64,000 nucleotides of DNA from the NCBI GenBank assembly GCA_016748015.1, contig JAAOMT010000675.1:372001-436000 (forward strand), written 5' to 3'. The stretch is from Geosiphon pyriformis uo1. Lineage: Eukaryota; Fungi; Glomeromycota. The stretch's first letter is position 1. Every line of letters starts with the position of its first letter. A program made the translations under genes and the position numbers. This document shows positions 2,901-26,800 of this stretch, piece by piece. The notes under the pieces were generated by a model. That model searched no databases, was not told the origin of the DNA, and saw nothing but the letters and a program-made list of their open reading frames with translations.

Positions 2901-3210
2901 NNNNNNNNNNNNNNNNNNNNNNNNNNNNNNNNNNNNNNNNNNNNNNNNNNNNNNNNNNNNNNNNNNNNNNNNNNNNNNNNNNNNNNNNNNNNNNNNNNNN
3001 NNNNNNNNNNNNNNNNNNNNNNNNNNNNNNNNNNNNNNNNNNNNNNNNNNNNNNNNNNNNNNNNNNNNNNNNNNNNNNNNNNNNNNNNNNNNNNNNNNNN
3101 NNNNNNNNNNNNNNNNNNNNNNNNNNNNNNNNNNNNNNNNNNNNNNNNNNNNNNNNNNNNNNNNNNNNNNNNNNNNNNNNNNNNNNNNNNNNNNNNNNNN
3201 NNNNNNNNNN
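2901..3210. other. Assembly gap (N run)
   Basis: 310 N bases. Confidence 1.
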
Positions 3211-4060
3211 TTTTTTTTTTTTTTTTCGCCCTCTTATCATTCGTTAAAGATCATATTTCTCACTACTTCAAAAAAAAATTATTTACTTTTTTAGCATCTA
3301 CTTGGAAGGCCTGTTTTTCGAAATAACTGCATTTAACTCGGTGGTTTTCGTTCTTTGTTCTTCAATAGGAATTATTTTAAAAAAAATCTCGTTACCATTT
3401 TCAGGCTTTTCAGCCAAGGATAATGTTAGGATATGCAGTTGAGGTCATAATATATGTTTCAGAATTGAATTTTTCAGAAGCGGGGCTGAACATGATAAAA
3501 ATTTTTCACAGAATTTTCAAGGAATTATAATCATAAAAATTCTTGGTATCTAATTTTCGCCACGAATATTCAAGAAGGCTTTTTTTTTTTCCAACTTGTG
3601 CTCATTTTTATTTTAATGAGAAAAATTTTGACATTCGATAAAGGAAAATATATGCTACAGTTGTAAGTATTTGACCCTTGTTCAAACTTTTTTTTTAATA
3701 GGATAAAAGCATATGAATAATAAAAGACTCGAACGACAGGGAGAGCTTATAGTACAATAAGTTAAAAAAAAAAAAACCTAACTTATTAAAAAAGTTTATG
3801 CAAAAAAAAAACACAAATGAAATAAGTATTTGATATGATACAATATTATTTATAAAATGCTATAGACAAAATTAAAAGTATGGTAATTTCCCTACTATAA
3901 AAAAAGGAATTTCTAATTTCTAATAAATTAATTGATCTTTTGATAATTTACTCCGAAAAAGATTAAATCCAAAAGCCAAAAATACATATATATATTTACA
4001 ATAATTTTTTTTTCTTTCTTAATATCGATACAAGAAAATAAACTTAAGTATTAGCTTAAT

Positions 4061-5821
4061 TCAACACACACCGTTCCAATGTTTTTGATATTGTTTAGGA
4101 TGTGCTGCTGGTTTGAGAGGGATTATGTCTTTAGCAATTTGTTTATCGAGTTCACCATTATTCGGATCCAACTTTCGATGTTGGCGACCATTTGTCCAAA
4201 ATGATCCTTTACTGGACGTAGTACTTGACGGTGAATCTTTTTTGTACAAGCTTTCGTTCATAATGTACGCTAACGAATTACCTATACCACCAAGGTTGAT
4301 ACCTAATGACGGAAATCAAATAAAAATATTAAAGAAATATTCTCAAGAGGGAAAGAGAAAAAGAAAAGAAAAGAAAAGAAAAGAAAAGAAATGAAATGAA
4401 ATGTAAAACTAACCCACTATGACTGTGATCAGAGTCCATGTTGAAGTTTTCTGTTATGTGAAAAGTTATAAATTGGTTAGATCATTAAAATTTTTTAGAA
4501 ATAAAAAAATTTAAACGAGGATATGAAACTAACCTGTAAGATGTTTGTTACCAAGAAAACTAAGACAGGAACCTGGAAATTATTTTGAATAATTTATAAA
4601 TTAGAATGGCTAAAAGCTTCCTAAAAAAAAATTGTTTTAAAAACCTACCCATTGCAACATAAAGACAAGCACATAACTAGCAATCTTTCGCGTAACTTTA
4701 TCTTCGAAACCATGATAATGACTCATAGTGTTTGCTTGGATGTTATTATCTACCAAGGTATCTAAAGAATCGCATCGACGTCGAGCCAGTACCAAGAAAA
4801 TTTGAAGAAAGCAAAAAGAAGTTACTATGACGACGCTCAACATCGTTCCGATTACAAATGATGTGTAGATAAAATTGTGTTGGGCTTTCAATGCACACCT
4901 ATTGAAAATTGGGTTTAAAGATAAGGTTGAGATCATGCATTTGAAAAACGTATTACCAAAAATGAGTAACATATTTAAAATACAAGAGAAAACCTACCAA
5001 TACAAATTTTGTTGACCAAAACCATCTTTGAATATCCCAGGTAGTACCGTTGACATGGTCAGCAATATTATAAGCGAGAATAACTTATAATCATATCGAC
5101 CGAAATCCACTATAATTCTACGATTAACCTTAAGATATGTGGAAACGGCAATAATACCGTATAGATAATAATTCATGCAAATGGCAGTTTGTTGAAATAC
5201 ACCGATTATTTTACATTGAGGATTTAACCATGGACGAATATTAATTGCTGTGTATGTCTTGAAAATTTTTAAAAGGTAAAATTTTAATTCTAATATTCAA
5301 TAGTATGTAAAGAATTAAAAACGACTTTAGATGAAATTAACATACCGTGTTCATCGCGTGAAATACCACAATTAATAAATCTGATCAAATATAAATATAT
5401 TTTATTTCAAATTCGATCAGCGAAATTTATTCTTTCCTTCTAAAAACTTGATCCACTTACAGTAAAAAAGAAAAAAGAAAAGAAGAAGCTAATTACCTGT
5501 TAAAGCGGTATAAAAAGGTAGTCTATAGGACATTGCCAAAGGTAAACCTTTCCTTGTACACGATTTCATAATGGTTCGATAGAAAACATAACAACAACCC
5601 AACAGATTAAGAGAGGTAGTGCTGATAGAAATAATCATCAAGAGATAGAATTGTTGATCTCGTTTATATGCTGGAATTCTTATTGATGGTTTAGTGATAT
5701 TTTGTGGTATGTATAGGTTATCATTGGTTATCGGTTGAACATTTTCTTGAGCAAATATTGTGATTGATGAAGAAATAAATGTAAGTAATAATATCGATGA
5801 GAATAAAAGTGATTGAATCAT
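4061..5821 (-). CDS. Multi-exon 7TM GPCR-like protein (Git3/cAMP-receptor-like) with signal peptide
   Basis: ORF fragments 5489-5821, 4994-5176, 4637-4972 and 4061-4261 are joined by GT-AG introns. Hydrophobic N-terminus, serial TM helices, motifs YRLPFYTALT, DFGRYDYKL, KIASYVLVFMLQW, GINLGGIGNSLAYIMNE. Confidence 0.8.
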
Positions 5822-20938: not shown

Positions 20939-21114
20939 TAAAAATAAAATACATATAAAATAAAATACATATAAGATAAAATACATATAAGATAAAATAC
21001 ATATAAGATAAAATACATATAAGATAAAATACATATAAGATAAAATACATATAAGATAAAATACATATAAGATAAAATACATATAAAATAAAATACATAT
21101 AAAATAAAATACAT
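20939..21114. repeat. Tandem array of 11 x 16-bp ATAA(G/A)ATAAAATACAT
   Basis: Units counted directly. No spacers, so not CRISPR-like. Confidence 0.95.
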
Positions 21115-21124
21115 CTAACAAAAT

Positions 21125-22933
21125 CTAGTAATGTCGTGGAGTGGAAACTGTAGTACTCCCTTCCATTTGTCTTTCCGATGAGGAAACAGATGCATGGTAT
21201 AGTAAGGATAAATTAGTAATTACTATATTACGTAGAAGTAACAAAGTTTCTATAAATTTTGTTACAACAGCTACTTCTGAAAATTGTACGGGAATCTCAG
21301 CAGATTGTAAATGGAAATATCGGTGTACATTAACCATATCTCGTAAGAGAAGATTCAAGTACAATACATTACCTGCTACTTGTATACCTACAACACCAAA
21401 CTGATCTTTATCTGGTTTAAGAGTTTGGCGTATCCAATATAGTCCATCATTAGTCTCTCGCCATAACTTAATCTCATCGTCGGTCTTTTTTTGTGAGGTA
21501 CAAGTTAATCGAGAGCATTCCACGTACATAAGTTCAAAAACTGTCTCCAGATATTTGACTTCAAGCATAATATCTGGACGTCTTCCCGTGTGCCCTTCTC
21601 CCTTTCTATCAGCACTTGCAATACTTTGCTTCTCTGATGTACTAATAAAAAGGGAGTCTCCAAAAGGAAGATTTTTCAACGCCGCCCGGATGACAGATAC
21701 TATAACGGTTGATTGATACGTCCCTTCATTTAAAGTTTCTGCGAATTCCGGGCTGAATGCTGAATTATTCCAAATATCTTTCAAAACATTAAGAATTTCA
21801 TCAACCACGCATTCGATATCTTCTTTCGATTCTTTCCAAGCCCCATCGTGTATCAATTTAGCTGGTTTCGTCTTGGTTTCATGCCTTTTAAAACCAAGTA
21901 CAAATCTTCCACACTTTTCTTCAACCATTGACAAAGATGTAGGTATCATTTTACGGATAGGTTTCTAATGCAAATTATATATCATTAACATTGTTAATAA
22001 AGCATAGCCGAAAACATATATAATTCTTTACCATAAATCCTTTTTTTAAATTTGCTGGTAGGTTATTTACAAATTCGCAGTCATCACTAACCACCTGACT
22101 GGCTAAAGGATCTTTCCAAGATAGTTCCGTAATTGATACTCCATTTACACCAGATAATAAATGTTGATATAGGGAGCCCGTATCTCTTTGGAGTTTCCTC
22201 TTAAGCTCACTCATATTGTTTTCGATTTGGTCCGAGCTAAGAGGCTTTTCTTTAGTTGTTTTAACAACTCCAAGATCGTACAATGTGGAGACTCCCTCGA
22301 AAGCATCTTCAAACTAAAAAATAGATATACATTAGTTTTCAGTACTAAAAAAAACCATCATTCAAAAAACCATCATTAAAAAAATGTATATATTATCAGA
22401 ACATATGCAAAGTTATCATTTTTGTGCGGCCGTCACGCCAATGAAACTCTGTGTGATACTAAATTTCTACACAACAATATAGCCCTCTTATCCCCCGTAG
22501 AGGCGATAAGCTTTTCTCACAATAGGTTAGTAGGATAAACTACATTACTGCGTAACAGTCTATAGCTTAGATATCCCTCTATCGTGAGCAAGTGTTTATC
22601 GGGACCGGATAAATAGGATAATTGAGCTAATCTTCGGTAGTGAATCTTATAGTCGACCACATAATATCATCATATAATGAAATAATTTATAAAAAAAAAT
22701 CAATAGCTAACCTGTGAATGAATCTTAATAAGCTTTCGCCGACGCGAAGACCCATCCGCACGTAAATGATTGATAGTATAATTAACGACTTGGTTTAAAA
22801 TCGTTCTCAAATCATTTTTCGGAATCCAGGGGTTTTCTTCTAAGCCTTGATGAACAACGGAGGTGGCATTTATATGACGCTCTTCAGCATTGATTAAAAA
22901 ATTGTGAATTTTGTTGTGTAAAAAAGCAGACAT
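21125..22933 (-). CDS. Crinkler-type PD-(D/E)XK restriction-endonuclease-fold protein, 447 aa; exons 22933-22712, 22313-22032, 21964-21125
   Basis: Three phase-0 exons (74+94+279 codons) join with no stops. Motifs LNEGTY, GRRPDIM, YVECSR, DDEIKLWRE, FGVVGIQVAG. Confidence 0.8.
22392..22678 (-). ncRNA. Candidate intronic box C/D structured RNA (~287 nt)
   Basis: Box C AUGAUGA at 22673-22667, box D CUGA at 22399-22396, terminal stem AUUA/UAAU in K-turn register. Internal helices contain G-U pairs on this strand. cUACGg hairpin present. Confidence 0.6.
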
Positions 22934-23891
22934 ATTGATTAGTCGAATTGGAAGAAATAAAAGCTTTGTTATATCGCAAGTAAAAAAGCAATGAAAAAGC
23001 ATAACGTGGAGATACTGTCCTTTTAAAACGTTTCCCTCCGTTCATTTCTGGCCTCATTTAGGTATGGACGACGCAATCCACAACGAAAAAAACTTTTCAC
23101 AAAGAAAATGCATATGCCATGAGTTAGTCCATGACCTTCGAATTGCTTCTGTAGTATAGCATGGGATTTGTTGATCGAAGATCGGTGATTGCAACCCGAT
23201 GGATTATTTAATCAGCGGATATTAATGATATACGGCACATGTTATTCATGTTTCAGTACACGTTAATTGGTTATTTATATTAAAATAATTTTTTTTCATT
23301 GATCATAAATTTCACTAATAAACGAATCCACCTTTTTTTATACAATAATACTAATTCGAGTTAACTTGCTCTATGTATTATAACCCCTTATAATATAGAT
23401 GTAATAAAGATAACAATAGTATAAAATTTTAATTTACATAATAACAATTATCAGTTAATGTTAATAGCAAATACTATTTTATAATAACAGCAAGTACTAT
23501 ATTATAATAGCAATTAAAATAAATTATTATAATAAATTATTTTATAAAACTATAAACATATATATATATATATAATAATTTTAATATTAAGAAAAAACAT
23601 TTTTAGCTTTAAATTTAAATTTAAAAATCTAAAATTATTCTAAAATAAATATTTAATTGAAAATTGAATTATTATTATAAAACTATTATAAAACTTATTT
23701 TGTATTTATTATTAAACAAAATTATTATTTATTAATTAAAATTATTTAAAGATTAATTTTTTATTTTATTTTATTTTAACGAGTGAGATCCAAACACAAC
23801 CTAGCACTATACATCAAGAAGTTGATCTAAACTAGGCATGAATCATGCACTATCTACACATGACCAGCCATTCAGGCTGATTAGAACAATA

Positions 23892-26800
23892 CTATGCAGC
23901 TATATGAACTGACACCAAATCACCTATACCTGAAAAGAACAAGCAAGACTTGTGAAAACCAAAATGAACACCTAAAGCATTAGCGACACCAAGTAATCTA
24001 ACTACCCCTGCAGAGAACCTCAAAGCCAAACCATGAACTGAAACAACGGCCGAACCATCTAGTGAGATCAGTCCATTCTTCTTCATATATGCATGATGCT
24101 TAGCACAGACCAACCAGACATCCTCCCTGAAAGCAAGACCAAGAGAGCACACAAACTTGACAGTCTCCAAAACAGCAATCTTGGGGTTGTGAAAGATGAA
24201 AACAGCCTCGCAAAACCACCCATTAAAAACAAAGCTCTTAAAAAAAGCCATGAACACAGAGGAATCAGAAACACCGGATGATAACAGCTGCAATATTCCT
24301 AAGGAAGAATGAGGGTAACCAGAAATCACCTTCCAGAACTTTATATGAGACTCCAACAACTGACGTTTAACAGACCCGTTAACCTTGCAAGAGAACACAT
24401 AATCTGACATCTCCACCTCACCACAATACAAGCACAACACACTAGAATAACGTCTATTATAGAGGTGCTTTCGAACAGCAACTGGCAGCCGATGGTGTAA
24501 AGACTTTATAAAGTAAGTATGCACACTAGACATAGACCTGCTAGTGAAACCTGCTGCCATGTGCAAATCAGAATGCCATACCAACAATAAGCAAGGCCAA
24601 TCAACCTCAGAAGACAAGCTGCTCACCAAAACCCCAGAACCAAAACCAACCTCCCACTGTGCACGACAAACAAAATGATAAATATCACGTACAAAATGTC
24701 TCAAATTACCAGAAACAATATCACCATCAGCTGATAAGAAATGCTCACTCAAGTGAGAAGGAAGATATCAATTGGAGAGAGAAGCGGCACCAGCAATTGC
24801 ATCAGCATGCTTGTTTCCCGAAACACCAGAATAATCTTTTATCTTGTGAAAGCTAACCCTCAACTTCTTACTGCGAATCACGTTAACAATATGATGACGT
24901 TCAACCCAACACTGATTACAATAATTGGGATACACCAGACCCAATTCCGACCTGTAAGCATCCAAAGCCAATTAACTATCCGAGAATAAACAGACAGAGC
25001 TTGATGAGGGAACACACTCCATAGCCAAGGCAATGGCCTGCAATTCCGCCAAAGTAGATGACATCAAATCCAACACACTAACACCCAAACCCAAACCAAT
25101 GTTCTCAAAAAAAACACCAGCACCAGCTCTACAGCCAACTGTGCCTAGATTACTAAGGGACCCATCCGTATATACTGACAGGCTGTTAGCACTGGCCGCC
25201 AAAAGACAATCACAAACAGATACAAAATCACCAGGCTCAAAAATGTTCGAAGGCCCACCATTACCCAAAACTAAAGACTGAGCACGAGAAGATCTCACAC
25301 TATTGAGAAACAAAACAGAAAGCTTGAACCACTTAGGAACTGGACCACGGGGGTCCAATCTCTTCCACCACTTGAAAGTGTACCAATTAAAGACAGCACC
25401 ATGACAGTCACAAAGTTGATCCACAAAGGCAATACCATACCGTCGAAGGGAAGGAAGAAACCTGAAAAATCTTAACTCACCCAAAACCTCAGACATAGGC
25501 ACTCCACCATGAGACCGAAAGAAACCAACTAAAGAGCCACCCAGAGACAAACTGTAATCGAGAAGAACACAAACCATGTCTGCCAGAAAGTTATTAGATG
25601 CATTGACACGAATATGAACAGGAGAACTCAATGGATGAACAGGACACCAACACAGAACTTACAAGTCATGAGACCTGTGAGAAAACAAACGACCCAAGAT
25701 ACCACCAGAGTTCACAAAACCGACAAGGGAAGCAACCTTGCTCTCAGATTGAACTTGAAAAAAAAACTTTAAACCATAAAATGAAGGGTGATAAATCACA
25801 TCATTAGGAAAGTCAAGCGGCAAACCAGACTTGAGCTTCAAGCCTTTACAAATCAGAGCATCCCACTTGTTGCACACGCCAACAGGAATAAAACTGAACT
25901 GAGTTCTATAGCTGACTATTGGATGCAGAACTGCTAACACCAAATACAAGAACTGCTTATCTGAGACCGCCTTCCTTAACACCAGATTGGTGAAAAAGCG
26001 AACATCCGAATGCATCTTAATCAAGCTAGGCTTCGAAAGACCCTCAGTCGATAGAAAAATGCTCAGATATTGGTGAGGTTCTCCCTTTTTGGCAATAGAA
26101 ATGGGCAAACTGCTGATAGAAAGAGAGAGATTGCTAATTCTGCTATTGATAAGAATGGCTACCATTTTGTCACTATTAATAGAGATGTTATTGACACAAA
26201 AAAATTCACTAGCAATATTGAAAATATGTTGAGTAGCCATCTGACTGCTGCCAACCCAAATTGTATCATCAACAAAAGCACCAGTGGCAAAAAAAGAAGA
26301 AAACCTGGCCTGGGATTTGGAACGACCATTCTTGGAAACAAAGTGAGAATTCAACCTATACCCACATACACTCTCCTGTCTTTTGACTTCACACAAAAAA
26401 GGATTATAAAATATGTGCCAGAGAAGAGGAGAAAATACCTCTCCCTGGTCCAAACCATCATGCACACGATAACCACTAGTCAATTCAAAATCAGTCATAA
26501 CTCGGTTGGTACAATCCCCATGAATACCACTAAAAAACTGAATAAATTTGCTATACATCTTAATCCTGACCAAACTCTTCTCGAGATGCTCCCAGCCAAC
26601 TGAATTATACGCCTTTCGCATGTTCTGTAGAACCAGCCAAAGCTCTCTGTTTTTTTCCAAAGCATCCTCAACTACCAAACCAACTGCAAAAATAGGAGAC
26701 TGGGTTGTTGTGTCTTTAAGAACCAAAAAATTGTCCCCCCGAAGCACGTCAAAAGTACTGTATGCCAGAGAAATCCTGTCAAAAAAGATCTTGGAGAAAA

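Follow-up and report, generated by a model that had tools for sequence, protein, structure and literature searches.

The window analysed here, a 64,000-nt stretch of contig JAAOMT010000675.1 of Geosiphon pyriformis uo1, carries on its minus strand the three-exon gene G9A89_023775, whose first intron is 398 nt long with GT..AG borders and whose second intron is 67 nt (Table 1). A 719-nt spliced cDNA contig joins 22712|22313 and 22032|21964 and thus confirms both intron borders, and the three-exon model encodes a product with 100% identity to annotated protein P0001. An earlier, sequence-only reading of this DNA had placed a large RNA with box C/D ends on the sense strand of intron 1 of an intact gene, ending 78 nt before the 3' splice site, and both the spliced cDNA and the coordinates agree with that placement. 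The same reading had called the host protein a PD-(D/E)XK nuclease. No Pfam family matches the protein, but its AlphaFold model (pLDDT 82) has the restriction-endonuclease-like alpha/beta core of the PD-(D/E)XK superfamily in the C-terminal domain, where residues 221-423 match the nuclease domain of DrdV (Z 10.6, rmsd 3.0 Å over 142 residues), BpuSI (Z 9.5) and 9y1l (Z 7.0), and Foldseek returned E 0.028 with a probability of 0.98 for the host protein. Residues E248, P298-D299 and K334, which may correspond to the catalytic E...(P)D...(D/E)xK set, do not vary across 28 homologs.

Table 1. Features of the G9A89_023775 locus, in positions of the window
Feature	Positions	Strand	Evidence or remark
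Host exon 1, coding part, 74 codons	22712-22933	-	cDNA contig
Intron 1 of G9A89_023775	22314-22711	-	spliced cDNA contig; P0001 equals three-exon model
Predicted mature box C/D RNA, ~287 nt, terminal stem to terminal stem	22392-22678	-	ortholog alignments A4 and A6; metatranscriptome contigs
Terminal stem, 5' strand AUUA	22675-22678	-	pairs with 22392-22395
Box C, AUGAUGA	22667-22673	-	present in 10/10 copies retaining the 5' end
Stem A, 5' strand (UGUGGU, 2-nt bulge, ACU)	22651-22661	-	100% of cells paired with 22452-22460
Internal domain, ~190 nt, mostly rod-like	22461-22650	-	RNAalifold model
Stem A, 3' strand (AGU-AUCACA)	22452-22460	-	pairs with 22651-22661
Stem B hairpin	22408-22451	-	17 sequences of alignment A7
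Junction CAUAUGUU, nearly invariant, stem B to box D	22400-22407	-	alignment A7
Box D, CUGA	22396-22399	-	CUGA in 15/17 copies
Terminal stem, 3' strand UAAU	22392-22395	-	pairs with 22675-22678
Downstream pair: AAUGAUGG 22377-22370 (duplicate 22362-22355) and CUGA 22342-22339	22339-22377	-	ortholog comparison
Host exon 2	22032-22313	-	cDNA contig
Host exon 3, encoding the PD-(D/E)XK-fold domain (residues ~221-422)	21125-21964	-	cDNA contig; structure model

The ends of the predicted RNA are those of an intronic box C/D snoRNA, with box C near the 5' end, box D near the 3' end, and a terminal stem that leaves a 3-nt bulge, all in sense orientation within a spliced intron and tens of nucleotides before the branch point. 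These boxes and the AUUA/UAAU stem had been proposed from the single sequence, and comparison with orthologs now supports them. Both boxes are kept in every copy that retains both ends of the RNA; the type-2 copy L086 has AUGAUGG as box C, and in L084 and L085 a box C of AUGAUAA occurs jointly with a box D of UUGA, replacing the G6-C1 Watson-Crick pair between the boxes with A-U (G-C in eight sequences, A-U in two). Among ten sequences the terminal stem has compensatory changes at three of its four pairs (UUA/UAA, CUA/UAG, UCG/CGG), and a second CUGA, considered as box D of another architecture, was rejected because the stem covaries with the first. When kink-turn and core helices are taken together in the same number of sequences, 97.5% of cells are paired and 11 of 29 pairs show compensatory changes, a result equalled by none of 500 shuffles and compared with at most 53% for slid controls; about five independent lineages are sampled, so that counts of covariation are modest throughout. 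Box C, box D and a terminal stem of 4-5 bp thus have the geometry of a kink-turn and covary as one, and the distance from box D to the downstream 3' splice site is 64-78 nt in most complete copies.

The interior of the RNA is also structured. Folding energy, for which the sequence-only reading had suggested shuffled controls, surpasses that of all 200 shuffles on the sense strand (z -3.1), the effect being weaker on the antisense strand (z -1.6), and the G.U pairs of stems A and B are compatible with the sense strand only. Stem A carries compensatory changes, with G.U, G-C and A-U at one pair and ACU/AGU against AUC/GAU. The domain that it encloses includes the helix 22588-22579/22525-22516 and an apical hairpin at 22559-22547, and in its RNAalifold model 92% of cells are paired and compensatory changes occur at 26 pairs, which none of 500 shuffles equals. 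Between clades this is the most divergent part of the RNA, for example in L050 and L059. Stem B, which directly follows stem A, consists of CAGAGUU/AACUUUG, then UCAUU/AAUGA, then an apical GUG-A-C[GGCC]G-CAC with an invariant GGCC tetraloop. It is 98% paired with four compensatory pairs, its lower helix is changed on both strands in L086 alone, the loop-closing pair is U-A in seven sequences and C-G in three, and single-sequence folding recovers the hairpin in four of five sequences. The junction from stem B to box D reads CAUAUG in all but one of the 16 type-1 sequences in alignment A7, the exception being Rhizophagus with CACAUG; no consistent internal pairing partner was found for this junction, and CAUAUGYW is the only unpaired stretch adjoining box D.

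Several internal elements of the sequence-only reading fared differently under comparison. Its basal stem UGUGGUCG/CGGCCGCA, its 10-bp pseudoknot helix CUCACGAUAG/CUAUUGUGAG and two hairpins can all be found in the sequence, but the basal stem shows no compensatory change and is outcompeted by stem A, and the 10-bp helix, while conserved, can be nested, such that a pseudoknot is not required. UAUCCU/AGGGAUA is paired in 93% of cells, with covariation, but covariation is also seen with a rival partner, GGGGAUAA. The ACUGU/GCAGU hairpin is supported by the orthologs, and UCAC/GUGA, UUUAUC/GAUAAA and the cUACGg hairpin are not conserved among them. The AUGAUAA at 22419-22413 and the 13-nt CUUUGCAUAUGUU at 22412-22400, once read as a C'-like box and a guide, are likewise present, but the first of these and the first half of the second form the 3' strand of stem B, and AUGAUAA covaries as a helix strand rather than as part of a C'/D' pair. 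A weak YYGA motif follows box C, with no conserved guide before it.

A methylation guide has a free antisense stretch of 10-21 nt upstream of box D or D', a position at which the Geosiphon RNA has AACUUUG, the 3' strand of stem B. Complementarity to rRNA, by exact, G.U and RNAduplex scans of the 5' ETS, 18S, ITS and most of the 28S, was no greater than that of shuffled guides; the rDNA locus was located by pattern, and the scans covered all of it but 466 nt (5.8S and the 28S 5' end). A 16-mer antisense to the segment before box D, searched in the whole genome with up to one mismatch, found only the RNA genes themselves; the scans run gave no rRNA or genomic target, and there is no free 13-nt guide of the kind proposed earlier. 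Two candidate contacts were set aside: a 12-nt Watson-Crick match of 22446-22435 to 28S (L079:6448-6459) lies within covarying stem B and is at about chance level, and a 7+4 split match to the 5' end of 18S (CAUAUGC...AAAG) is not significant and is broken in Rhizophagus. Since there is neither a free antisense element of at least 10 nt nor a C'/D' pair, guiding of 2'-O-methylation is most likely not the role of this RNA. Rfam 15 gave no match at gathering thresholds in the window and chance-level matches only (E of at least 0.1) for the element and three orthologs; a strong match to a known snoRNA, which would have spoken against the novelty claimed earlier, did not appear, no family matching even at E 10 in that check. 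No description of this RNA was found in the literature.

The 128-Mb genome holds one full copy of the element and one truncated copy in a paralog that arose by gene duplication. Outside Geosiphon, the element occupies the same, orthologous intron in Diversispora epigaea, Rhizophagus irregularis, Ambispora leptoticha and Paraglomus occultum; some ten further contigs, from metagenomes or Logan, also have it, and without exception the homolog of exon 2 follows immediately after it. It is carried by four orders (Archaeosporales, Diversisporales, Glomerales and Paraglomerales). The earlier reading had staked itself on conservation and covariation in homologous introns, and both are present across the orthologs. 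Between Geosiphon and Diversispora the RNA is 80-81% identical, as against 73% for coding exons, 57% for third codon positions and 51% for four-fold sites (n=109); at the level of sequence, this shows that the RNA evolves more slowly than the exons flanking it and supports strong selection on the element. The 3' domain keeps a constant length of 73 nt; complete copies and their closest partial relatives are 79-92% identical in it, and identity falls to 69-75% where copies are decaying or have diverged most, namely in L045, Ambispora, Paraglomus and the type-2 copy L086. A hidden exon or other coding role is excluded by stop codons and 1-nt indels. At some 20 loci, in two paralogous subfamilies (type 1 and type 2), RNA and host gene were never found apart, and they have been inherited together through speciation and one gene duplication, with the sequence before box D differing between the two subfamilies. 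Other paralogs of the host protein lack such an RNA, and where Gigaspora (L039-L041) and a second Ambispora locus (L043) have a homolog of the C-terminal exon, the 3 kb upstream contain neither exons 1-2 nor the RNA.

Words of the element occur in 18 RNA runs. In three metatranscriptomes, contigs from a close relative cover the element and not the exons, and these contigs are silent on ends, strand and level; contigs were placed at a threshold of 82% identity, and the exons of the closest known relative (ENA L034), at 84-86%, lie above it. The cDNA run of Geosiphon itself yielded no contig inside intron 1. Among the metatranscriptome contigs, one is circularly permuted and others continue for 40-43 nt beyond box D. 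These features recall archaeal circular C/D sRNAs and the sno-lncRNA and SPA transcripts, a likeness seen in single contigs, for which an assembly artefact or a tandem copy of the gene accounts equally well.

Taken together, the element is probably a lineage-specific RNA of about 285-305 nt, intron-encoded and similar to box C/D snoRNAs, and the earlier proposal of an unrecognised non-coding RNA with genuine C/D-type ends, much longer than the usual C/D snoRNA, holds up in the light of the orthologs and the lack of an Rfam match. It would be made as intronic snoRNAs are: the intron is presumably spliced and debranched, and exonucleases would then trim it to a core snoRNP of Snu13, Nop56, Nop58 and fibrillarin assembled on the kink-turn, leaving a stable nucleolar or nuclear RNA. 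With canonical intronic C/D snoRNAs it shares the sense intronic site, the distance of box D from the 3' splice site, the RUGAUGA and CUGA boxes, the bulged terminal stem and, presumably, this route of release. Unlike them, it is three to four times longer, lacks C'/D' boxes and an Rfam match, shows no complementarity to the rRNA scanned, and has the sequence before box D largely base-paired. A parallel is also offered by the 3' domain of U3, and by U8, snR190, snR4, snR45 and SNORD13, in which a C/D kink-turn likewise closes a structured RNA. These act by pairing or chaperoning rather than by methylation (snR4, snR45 and SNORD13 are acetylation guides), and they are usually single genes conserved within a lineage. 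The Geosiphon RNA is more likely a structural or chaperone-type RNP, like U3, U8, snR190 and snR4/snR45, than a methylation guide. It differs from this group in having no similarity in sequence or covariance model in the Rfam scans, no 5' extension as in U3 and U8, and no identified antisense blocks.

The ncRNAs of arbuscular-mycorrhizal fungi are, to our knowledge, almost uncharted, and an orphan C/D RNA of about 290 nt that changes more slowly than its neighbouring exons across four orders must matter functionally. It offers a new Rfam family, a marker visible in soil and root metatranscriptomes, and a case in which to study what C/D RNPs other than guides do beyond yeast and animals. For a snoRNA, so unbroken a link to a single family of nuclease-fold host genes is unusual.

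One alternative reading, which we hold to be possible but rather unlikely, is that the element is not a released RNA but a structure acting in cis on the host pre-mRNA, where its kink-turn or kink-turns and the 3' domain adjoining the branch site would bind Snu13, an L7Ae/L30-type protein or the host protein, and so control splicing of intron 1 and expression of the host. The constant association of RNA and gene in both subfamilies is consistent with this, as are the contigs that continue beyond box D, the conservation of copies that lack box C, and a second UGAUGR...YUGA pair downstream of box D. This second pair, whose CUGA lies just upstream of a branch-site-like CUAAU (22335-22331), is found in most orthologs, including copies without box C, and is absent from the RNA-less paralog intron L010:1003-1068; it gives only weak matches to C/D models (E 0.95 and 3.2). 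Copies that have lost box C and the 5' strand of stem A stay conserved, at 87% identity versus 72% for four-fold sites (ENA L034/JGI L035), and the 3' part is retained in all four truncated copies found through the protein, which hints that it may have a role of its own. However, canonical boxes with a covarying terminal stem, spaced as usual from the 3' splice site, are what marks an intronic snoRNA that is released, the metatranscriptomes show the element without exons, and a regulatory structure rarely needs some 290 nt at 80% identity between orders.

It is unlikely that the element is some other trans-acting ncRNA with a C/D-like closing motif, for instance a composite scaRNA, or the scaffold of an RNP that has no part in ribosome biogenesis. 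U85 (~330 nt) and other composite C/D-H/ACA scaRNAs are also intronic, about 300 nt long and closed by C/D ends around a large insert, and the failure of the scans to find an rRNA target and the invariance of the GGCC loop and junction would fit such an RNA. In contrast to the hairpin pair of these scaRNAs, the Geosiphon insert is a single rod without recognisable H or ACA boxes, the only conserved ACA lying inside stem A, and we know of no composite scaRNA described in fungi. A telomerase-like template (CUAACC) fails as well, since the motif varies (CUACCAACC, CCAUUAGC) in L051, L050 and L059, none of which retains CUACUAACC; an internal UACUAAC was rejected as a branch point because of the same variation.

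Quite improbable, in our estimate, is that the RNA works in trans as guide, scaffold or inhibitor of the PD-(D/E)XK-fold protein of its own host gene, with the kink-turn merely stabilising it. Co-inheritance through speciation and duplication, the nuclease fold of a host protein that, over its full length, is closest in structure to RNA-bound mitoribosomal proteins sharing this fold, and the difference in pre-box-D sequence between the RNA subfamilies are what such a partnership would predict, but other paralogs of the protein do without the RNA, the 16-mer antisense has no other genomic match, and snoRNA host genes are normally unlinked in function to their snoRNA. The idea is speculation, as are the earlier reading's suggestions of a guide, scaffold or antitoxin RNA or of a ribozyme, the constant linkage of RNA and gene being the sole fact that speaks for them. 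Its fullest form, to which we give slightly less credence again, makes gene and intron a two-part module, kept through the whole history of the Glomeromycotina, in which the spliced-out RNA would bind the protein of the same transcript and direct, scaffold or restrain it. If true, this would be a eukaryotic RNA-dependent nuclease or RNA-binding system with its RNA delivered by splicing, and the type 1 and type 2 RNAs would be specificity variants.

Although a distant paralog has a 66-nt intron matching just the two ends of intron 1, which makes the element look like an old insertion of ~330 nt, a functionless origin as neutral insertion, decayed MITE or other mobile element, or assembly artefact is barely credible and, on the conservation data, already refuted, the element being single-copy as a full unit and without terminal inverted repeats rather than dispersed at non-syntenic sites in many copies, syntenic in four orders, more conserved than exons and marked by compensatory changes.

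The palindromic YGGCCR at the tip of stem B was also considered as a dimerisation loop; a Y-R pair closing the GGCC tetraloop is the simpler reading, and in L086 the motif becomes a stem.

The element at 22392-22678 on the minus strand is real and better than a chance motif match. Intron 1 of a conserved Glomeromycotina gene here carries a structured RNA of ~285-305 nt that is deeply conserved and whose box C/D ends are authentic and covary. The motifs listed by the sequence-only reading were all found where it placed them, and its borders of intron 1 match exactly a splice seen in a 719-nt cDNA-type contig (run X1). Both junctions, 22712/22313 and 22032/21964, are present in this one contig, and introns 1 and 2 are therefore really spliced. 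The host gene, G9A89_023775 of Geosiphon pyriformis (window at G000:C790:372001-436000), encodes a product of 447 aa; exon 3 agrees with database protein P0001 at 100% identity, and P0001 is as long as the three-exon model predicts. Protein searches used one exon at a time, with the complete protein available only via its database id, and a joined CDS was assembled solely for counting codon positions. Directly after the host stop codon (20944-21118) lies a perfect-looking tandem array of the 16-nt unit ATAAAATACATATAAG, with 10.9 copies and 98% matches.

Coordinates of the host gene, the RNA and its relatives
Feature	Position	Strand	Remark
Exon 1	22933-22712	-	three-exon model
Intron 1	22711-22314	-	three-exon model, splice in cDNA-type contig
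Exon 2	22313-22032	-	three-exon model
Intron 2	22031-21965	-	three-exon model, splice in cDNA-type contig
Exon 3	21964-21125	-	three-exon model
Terminal stem AUUA/UAAU	22678-22675/22395-22392	-
Box C AUGAUGA	22673-22667	-
Stem A	22661-22651/22460-22452	-
10-bp helix	22588-22579/22525-22516	-
Stem B	22451-22408	-	three tiers
Unpaired CAUAUGYW	22407-22400	-
Box D CUGA	22399-22396	-
Downstream UUUU-AAUGAUGR...YUGA-AAA pair	22339-22377	-
First unit of this pair, tandem copies	22377-22370; 22362-22355	-
Branch-site-like CUAAU	22335-22331	-
Type 2 RNA	G000:C510:14701-14783	-	L088-L090 set
Type 2 RNA	G000:C567:42343-42425	-	L088-L090 set
Type 2 RNA	G000:C525:73242-73324	+	L088-L090 set
Type 2 RNA	ENA L086:1370-1603
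Ortholog, Diversispora epigaea	L036
Ortholog, Rhizophagus irregularis C2	L038
Ortholog, Ambispora leptoticha	L037		5'-truncated
Ortholog, Paraglomus occultum	L042		3' domain only
Orthologs			~ten metagenome or Logan contigs

Orthologs were sampled by fetching DNA around exon 3 homologs, together with one pattern scan of metagenome contigs, and in every case the element sits in the orthologous intron, directly 5' of the exon 2 homolog. Between Geosiphon and Diversispora, identity is 80-81% in the RNA, 73% in CDS nucleotides, 57% at third codon positions and 51% at four-fold sites (n=109); the corresponding values for Rhizophagus are 68% in the RNA and 43-53% at four-fold sites. Judged from such identities, the intron sequence itself is under purifying selection. 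The last 73 nt of the RNA begin with the 3' strand of stem A and include box D. This segment is exactly 73 nt long in 14 of 17 sequences in alignment A7, with identity to Geosiphon of 79-92% in complete copies and the closest partial relatives; L045, Ambispora, Paraglomus and L086, a type-2 copy, have 69-75%. At the place of the internal domain Paraglomus has a long perfect palindrome (GTACCCCGGGTA...TACCCGGGGTAC; L042:3230-3330) that looks like a small inverted-repeat insertion. A hidden exon is excluded, since stop codons occur and the orthologs differ by indels of 1 nt.

The structure was examined in alignments of 7, then 10, copies having both boxes (A4 and A6). The model of the sequence-only reading leaves 77% of cells paired, and an RNAalifold model to which the terminal stem was added reaches 92%, with 26 compensatory pairs and none of 500 shuffles its equal, although the latter was derived from the same alignment and is therefore favoured by construction. 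A trusted core of five elements (terminal stem, G6-C1 pair, stem A, stem B and the 10-bp helix) was counted separately on the 10 sequences of A6: 97.5% of cells are paired and 11 of 29 pairs are compensatory, with 0/500 shuffles as good and slid controls at 27-53%. The terminal stem varies as UUA/UAA, CUA/UAG and UCG/CGG. In eight sequences G6 of box C and C1 of box D pair as G-C; L084 and L085 have A-U instead (AUGAUAA with UUGA), a switch that is a compensatory change within the kink-turn. In stem A, UGUGRU-NN-AYY pairs with RRU-AYCACA, one pair being G.U, G-C or A-U, and ACU/AGU alternates with AUC/GAU. The lower helix of stem B, CARAGUU/AACUUUG, is altered on both strands in the divergent L086, to UAAAGUC/GGCUUUA; the middle helix, UYRUY/RAURR, has several compensatory changes, and in the apex, GUG-N-Y[GGCC]R-CAC, the loop-closing pair switches between U-A and C-G.

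Other parts of the earlier fold fared unevenly. The 10-bp helix holds, with five compensatory pairs, and its pseudoknot topology is not required: UAUCCU covaries both with AGGGAUA, which makes the helix pseudoknotted, and with GGGGAUAA, which leaves it nested. The proposed basal stem UGUGGUCG/CGGCCGCA has zero compensatory support, and neither UCAC/GUGA nor the UUUAUC and cUACGg hairpins are conserved. The argument that G-U pairs point to one strand stands, the G.U pairs of stems A and B being compatible with the sense strand only. Folding of that strand gives -77.1 kcal/mol (z -3.1), better than all 200 shuffled controls, a comparison the reading had itself proposed; the antisense fold is weaker (z -1.6). 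G+C is ~36% in the element and falls to 8-20% in adjacent intergenic DNA.

The 128-Mb genome holds one full copy, and a second in a 5'-truncated paralog (C553:306.7 kb) lacking the 5' half and two internal pieces, so that a repeat, including the dispersed MITE considered earlier, is ruled out by copy number. In this paralog (P0002; G000:C553:305236-308329; L002, L005) exon 3 is open, at 85% aa identity, and unrelated sequence stands in place of exon 1 and of the intron RNA's 5' half, the RNA remnant having two internal deletions. The metagenome copies L034 (ENA) and L035 (JGI) contain neither box C nor stem A's 5' strand, and their remainder is 87% identical to Geosiphon (four-fold sites 72%). 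Diagnostic changes are common to them and the truncated Geosiphon paralog, and a metatranscriptome contig with those changes has box C; by these shared changes they are therefore probably truncated paralogs coexisting with an intact copy. The 3' part is retained in all four truncated copies found via protein (C553 paralog, ENA/JGI, Ambispora and Paraglomus). A search with R1, a covariance model of this 3' domain, revealed a second subfamily, type 2, with a 9-nt insert AGUAGCUAA in the apical loop of stem B and a pre-box D sequence that differs from type 1. Each of its loci lies just 5' of an exon 2 homolog, at 45-48% aa identity. Among themselves the Geosiphon loci, three in number, are ~95% alike, and their box C appears degenerate. 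A distant broken paralog (L010) has an intron 1 of 66 nt that matches only the first ~33 and last ~35 nt of Geosiphon intron 1, so that the element behaves like an old insertion of ~330 nt.

Words of the element were found in 18 RNA runs, for the most part metatranscriptomes from soil, plant and sediment; three of these runs were mapped on the window at a threshold of 82% identity. Metatranscriptome contigs assigned to a close relative, 205-351 nt in length, cover 22325-22678 only. Two contigs extend 40-43 nt beyond box D, and those of an L059-like relative, which are deeper (depth 9-13), share 22394-22471 only. No contig matched the exons in the three metatranscriptomes at this threshold, and ENA L034, the closest relative known, has exons at 84-86% identity, above that threshold. 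Contigs on the element and none on the exons argue that the element exceeds host mRNA or DNA in abundance in those samples, the contigs carrying no ends, strand or level. Geosiphon's own cDNA run has nothing in the intron. One contig of the close relative (X4 record 9) is circularly permuted, 22325 being joined to 22678, which may reflect circularity of the RNA, gene copies in tandem or an artefact of assembly.

We consider it somewhat probable, and more so than the alternatives, that the element is released as a stable RNA of snoRNP type with a function other than guiding. The C'-like AUGAUAA of the sequence-only reading is a helix strand in stem B, and of its candidate guide only the CAUAUGYW ahead of box D is unpaired. 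Ribosomal DNA was located by pattern at L079 (G000:C659:983000-992900; 18S at 2958-4774), and the scan covered the locus on either side of 466 nt of N after ITS1 (5.8S and the 28S start). Within this scope, complement scans (exact and with G.U pairs) and duplex energies gave four conserved segments no advantage over shuffled guides, and the complement of the 16 nt ahead of box D has no other genomic occurrence at up to 1 mismatch; the proposed guide thus found no target, and the RNA was therefore not filed as a methylation guide. Rfam 15 gave nothing for the element and three orthologs at gathering thresholds, and chance-level matches only at E up to 10, leaving no strong match there to a known snoRNA family; the element represents an RNA family that is new and, within the box C/D class, an unusual variant. 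Rfam at gathering threshold also gave no 28S match in L079. Four contigs together carry 18S 5' ends at five or more scattered positions, suggesting that the rDNA copies are not arranged in tandem.

A cis-regulatory role within the intron seems improbable to us. The intron has a further UUUU-AAUGAUGR...YUGA-AAA pair ~20 nt past box D, just 5' of a branch-site-like CUAAY, and this pair, whose first unit is tandemly duplicated in Geosiphon, could by its sequence form a second kink-turn. It is kept in most copies, including those without box C, and is absent from the RNA-less paralog intron.

We regard a dedicated partnership between the RNA and the nuclease-fold host protein as very unlikely; the RNA is absent from other paralogs of the host gene. 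Exon-wise search gave no Pfam match for the protein. In an AlphaFold model built with 28 homologs (pLDDT 82), residues ~221-422 match the PD-(D/E)XK nuclease domain of DrdV (Z 10.6, rmsd 3.0 A, 142 aa) and the PD-(D/E)XK domains of BpuSI (Z 9.5) and 9y1l (Z 7.0), so the predicted structure supports the PD-(D/E)XK fold assigned earlier. E248, P298-D299 and K334 are invariant in the 28 homologs, and the complete model has a match at Z about 12 to a large-subunit protein of the mammalian mitoribosome (~390 aa).

Window positions 23850-26000 form a long stretch of 40-45% G+C with very strong A>T skew on the plus strand (AT skew 0.3-0.48), probably another gene or a purine-rich repeat. A third gene copy on the same contig (L006; G000:C790:454901-458722), ~20 kb past the window end and 75% identical in aa, has five stop codons, is cut off within exon 2 by AT-rich sequence and is a pseudogene.
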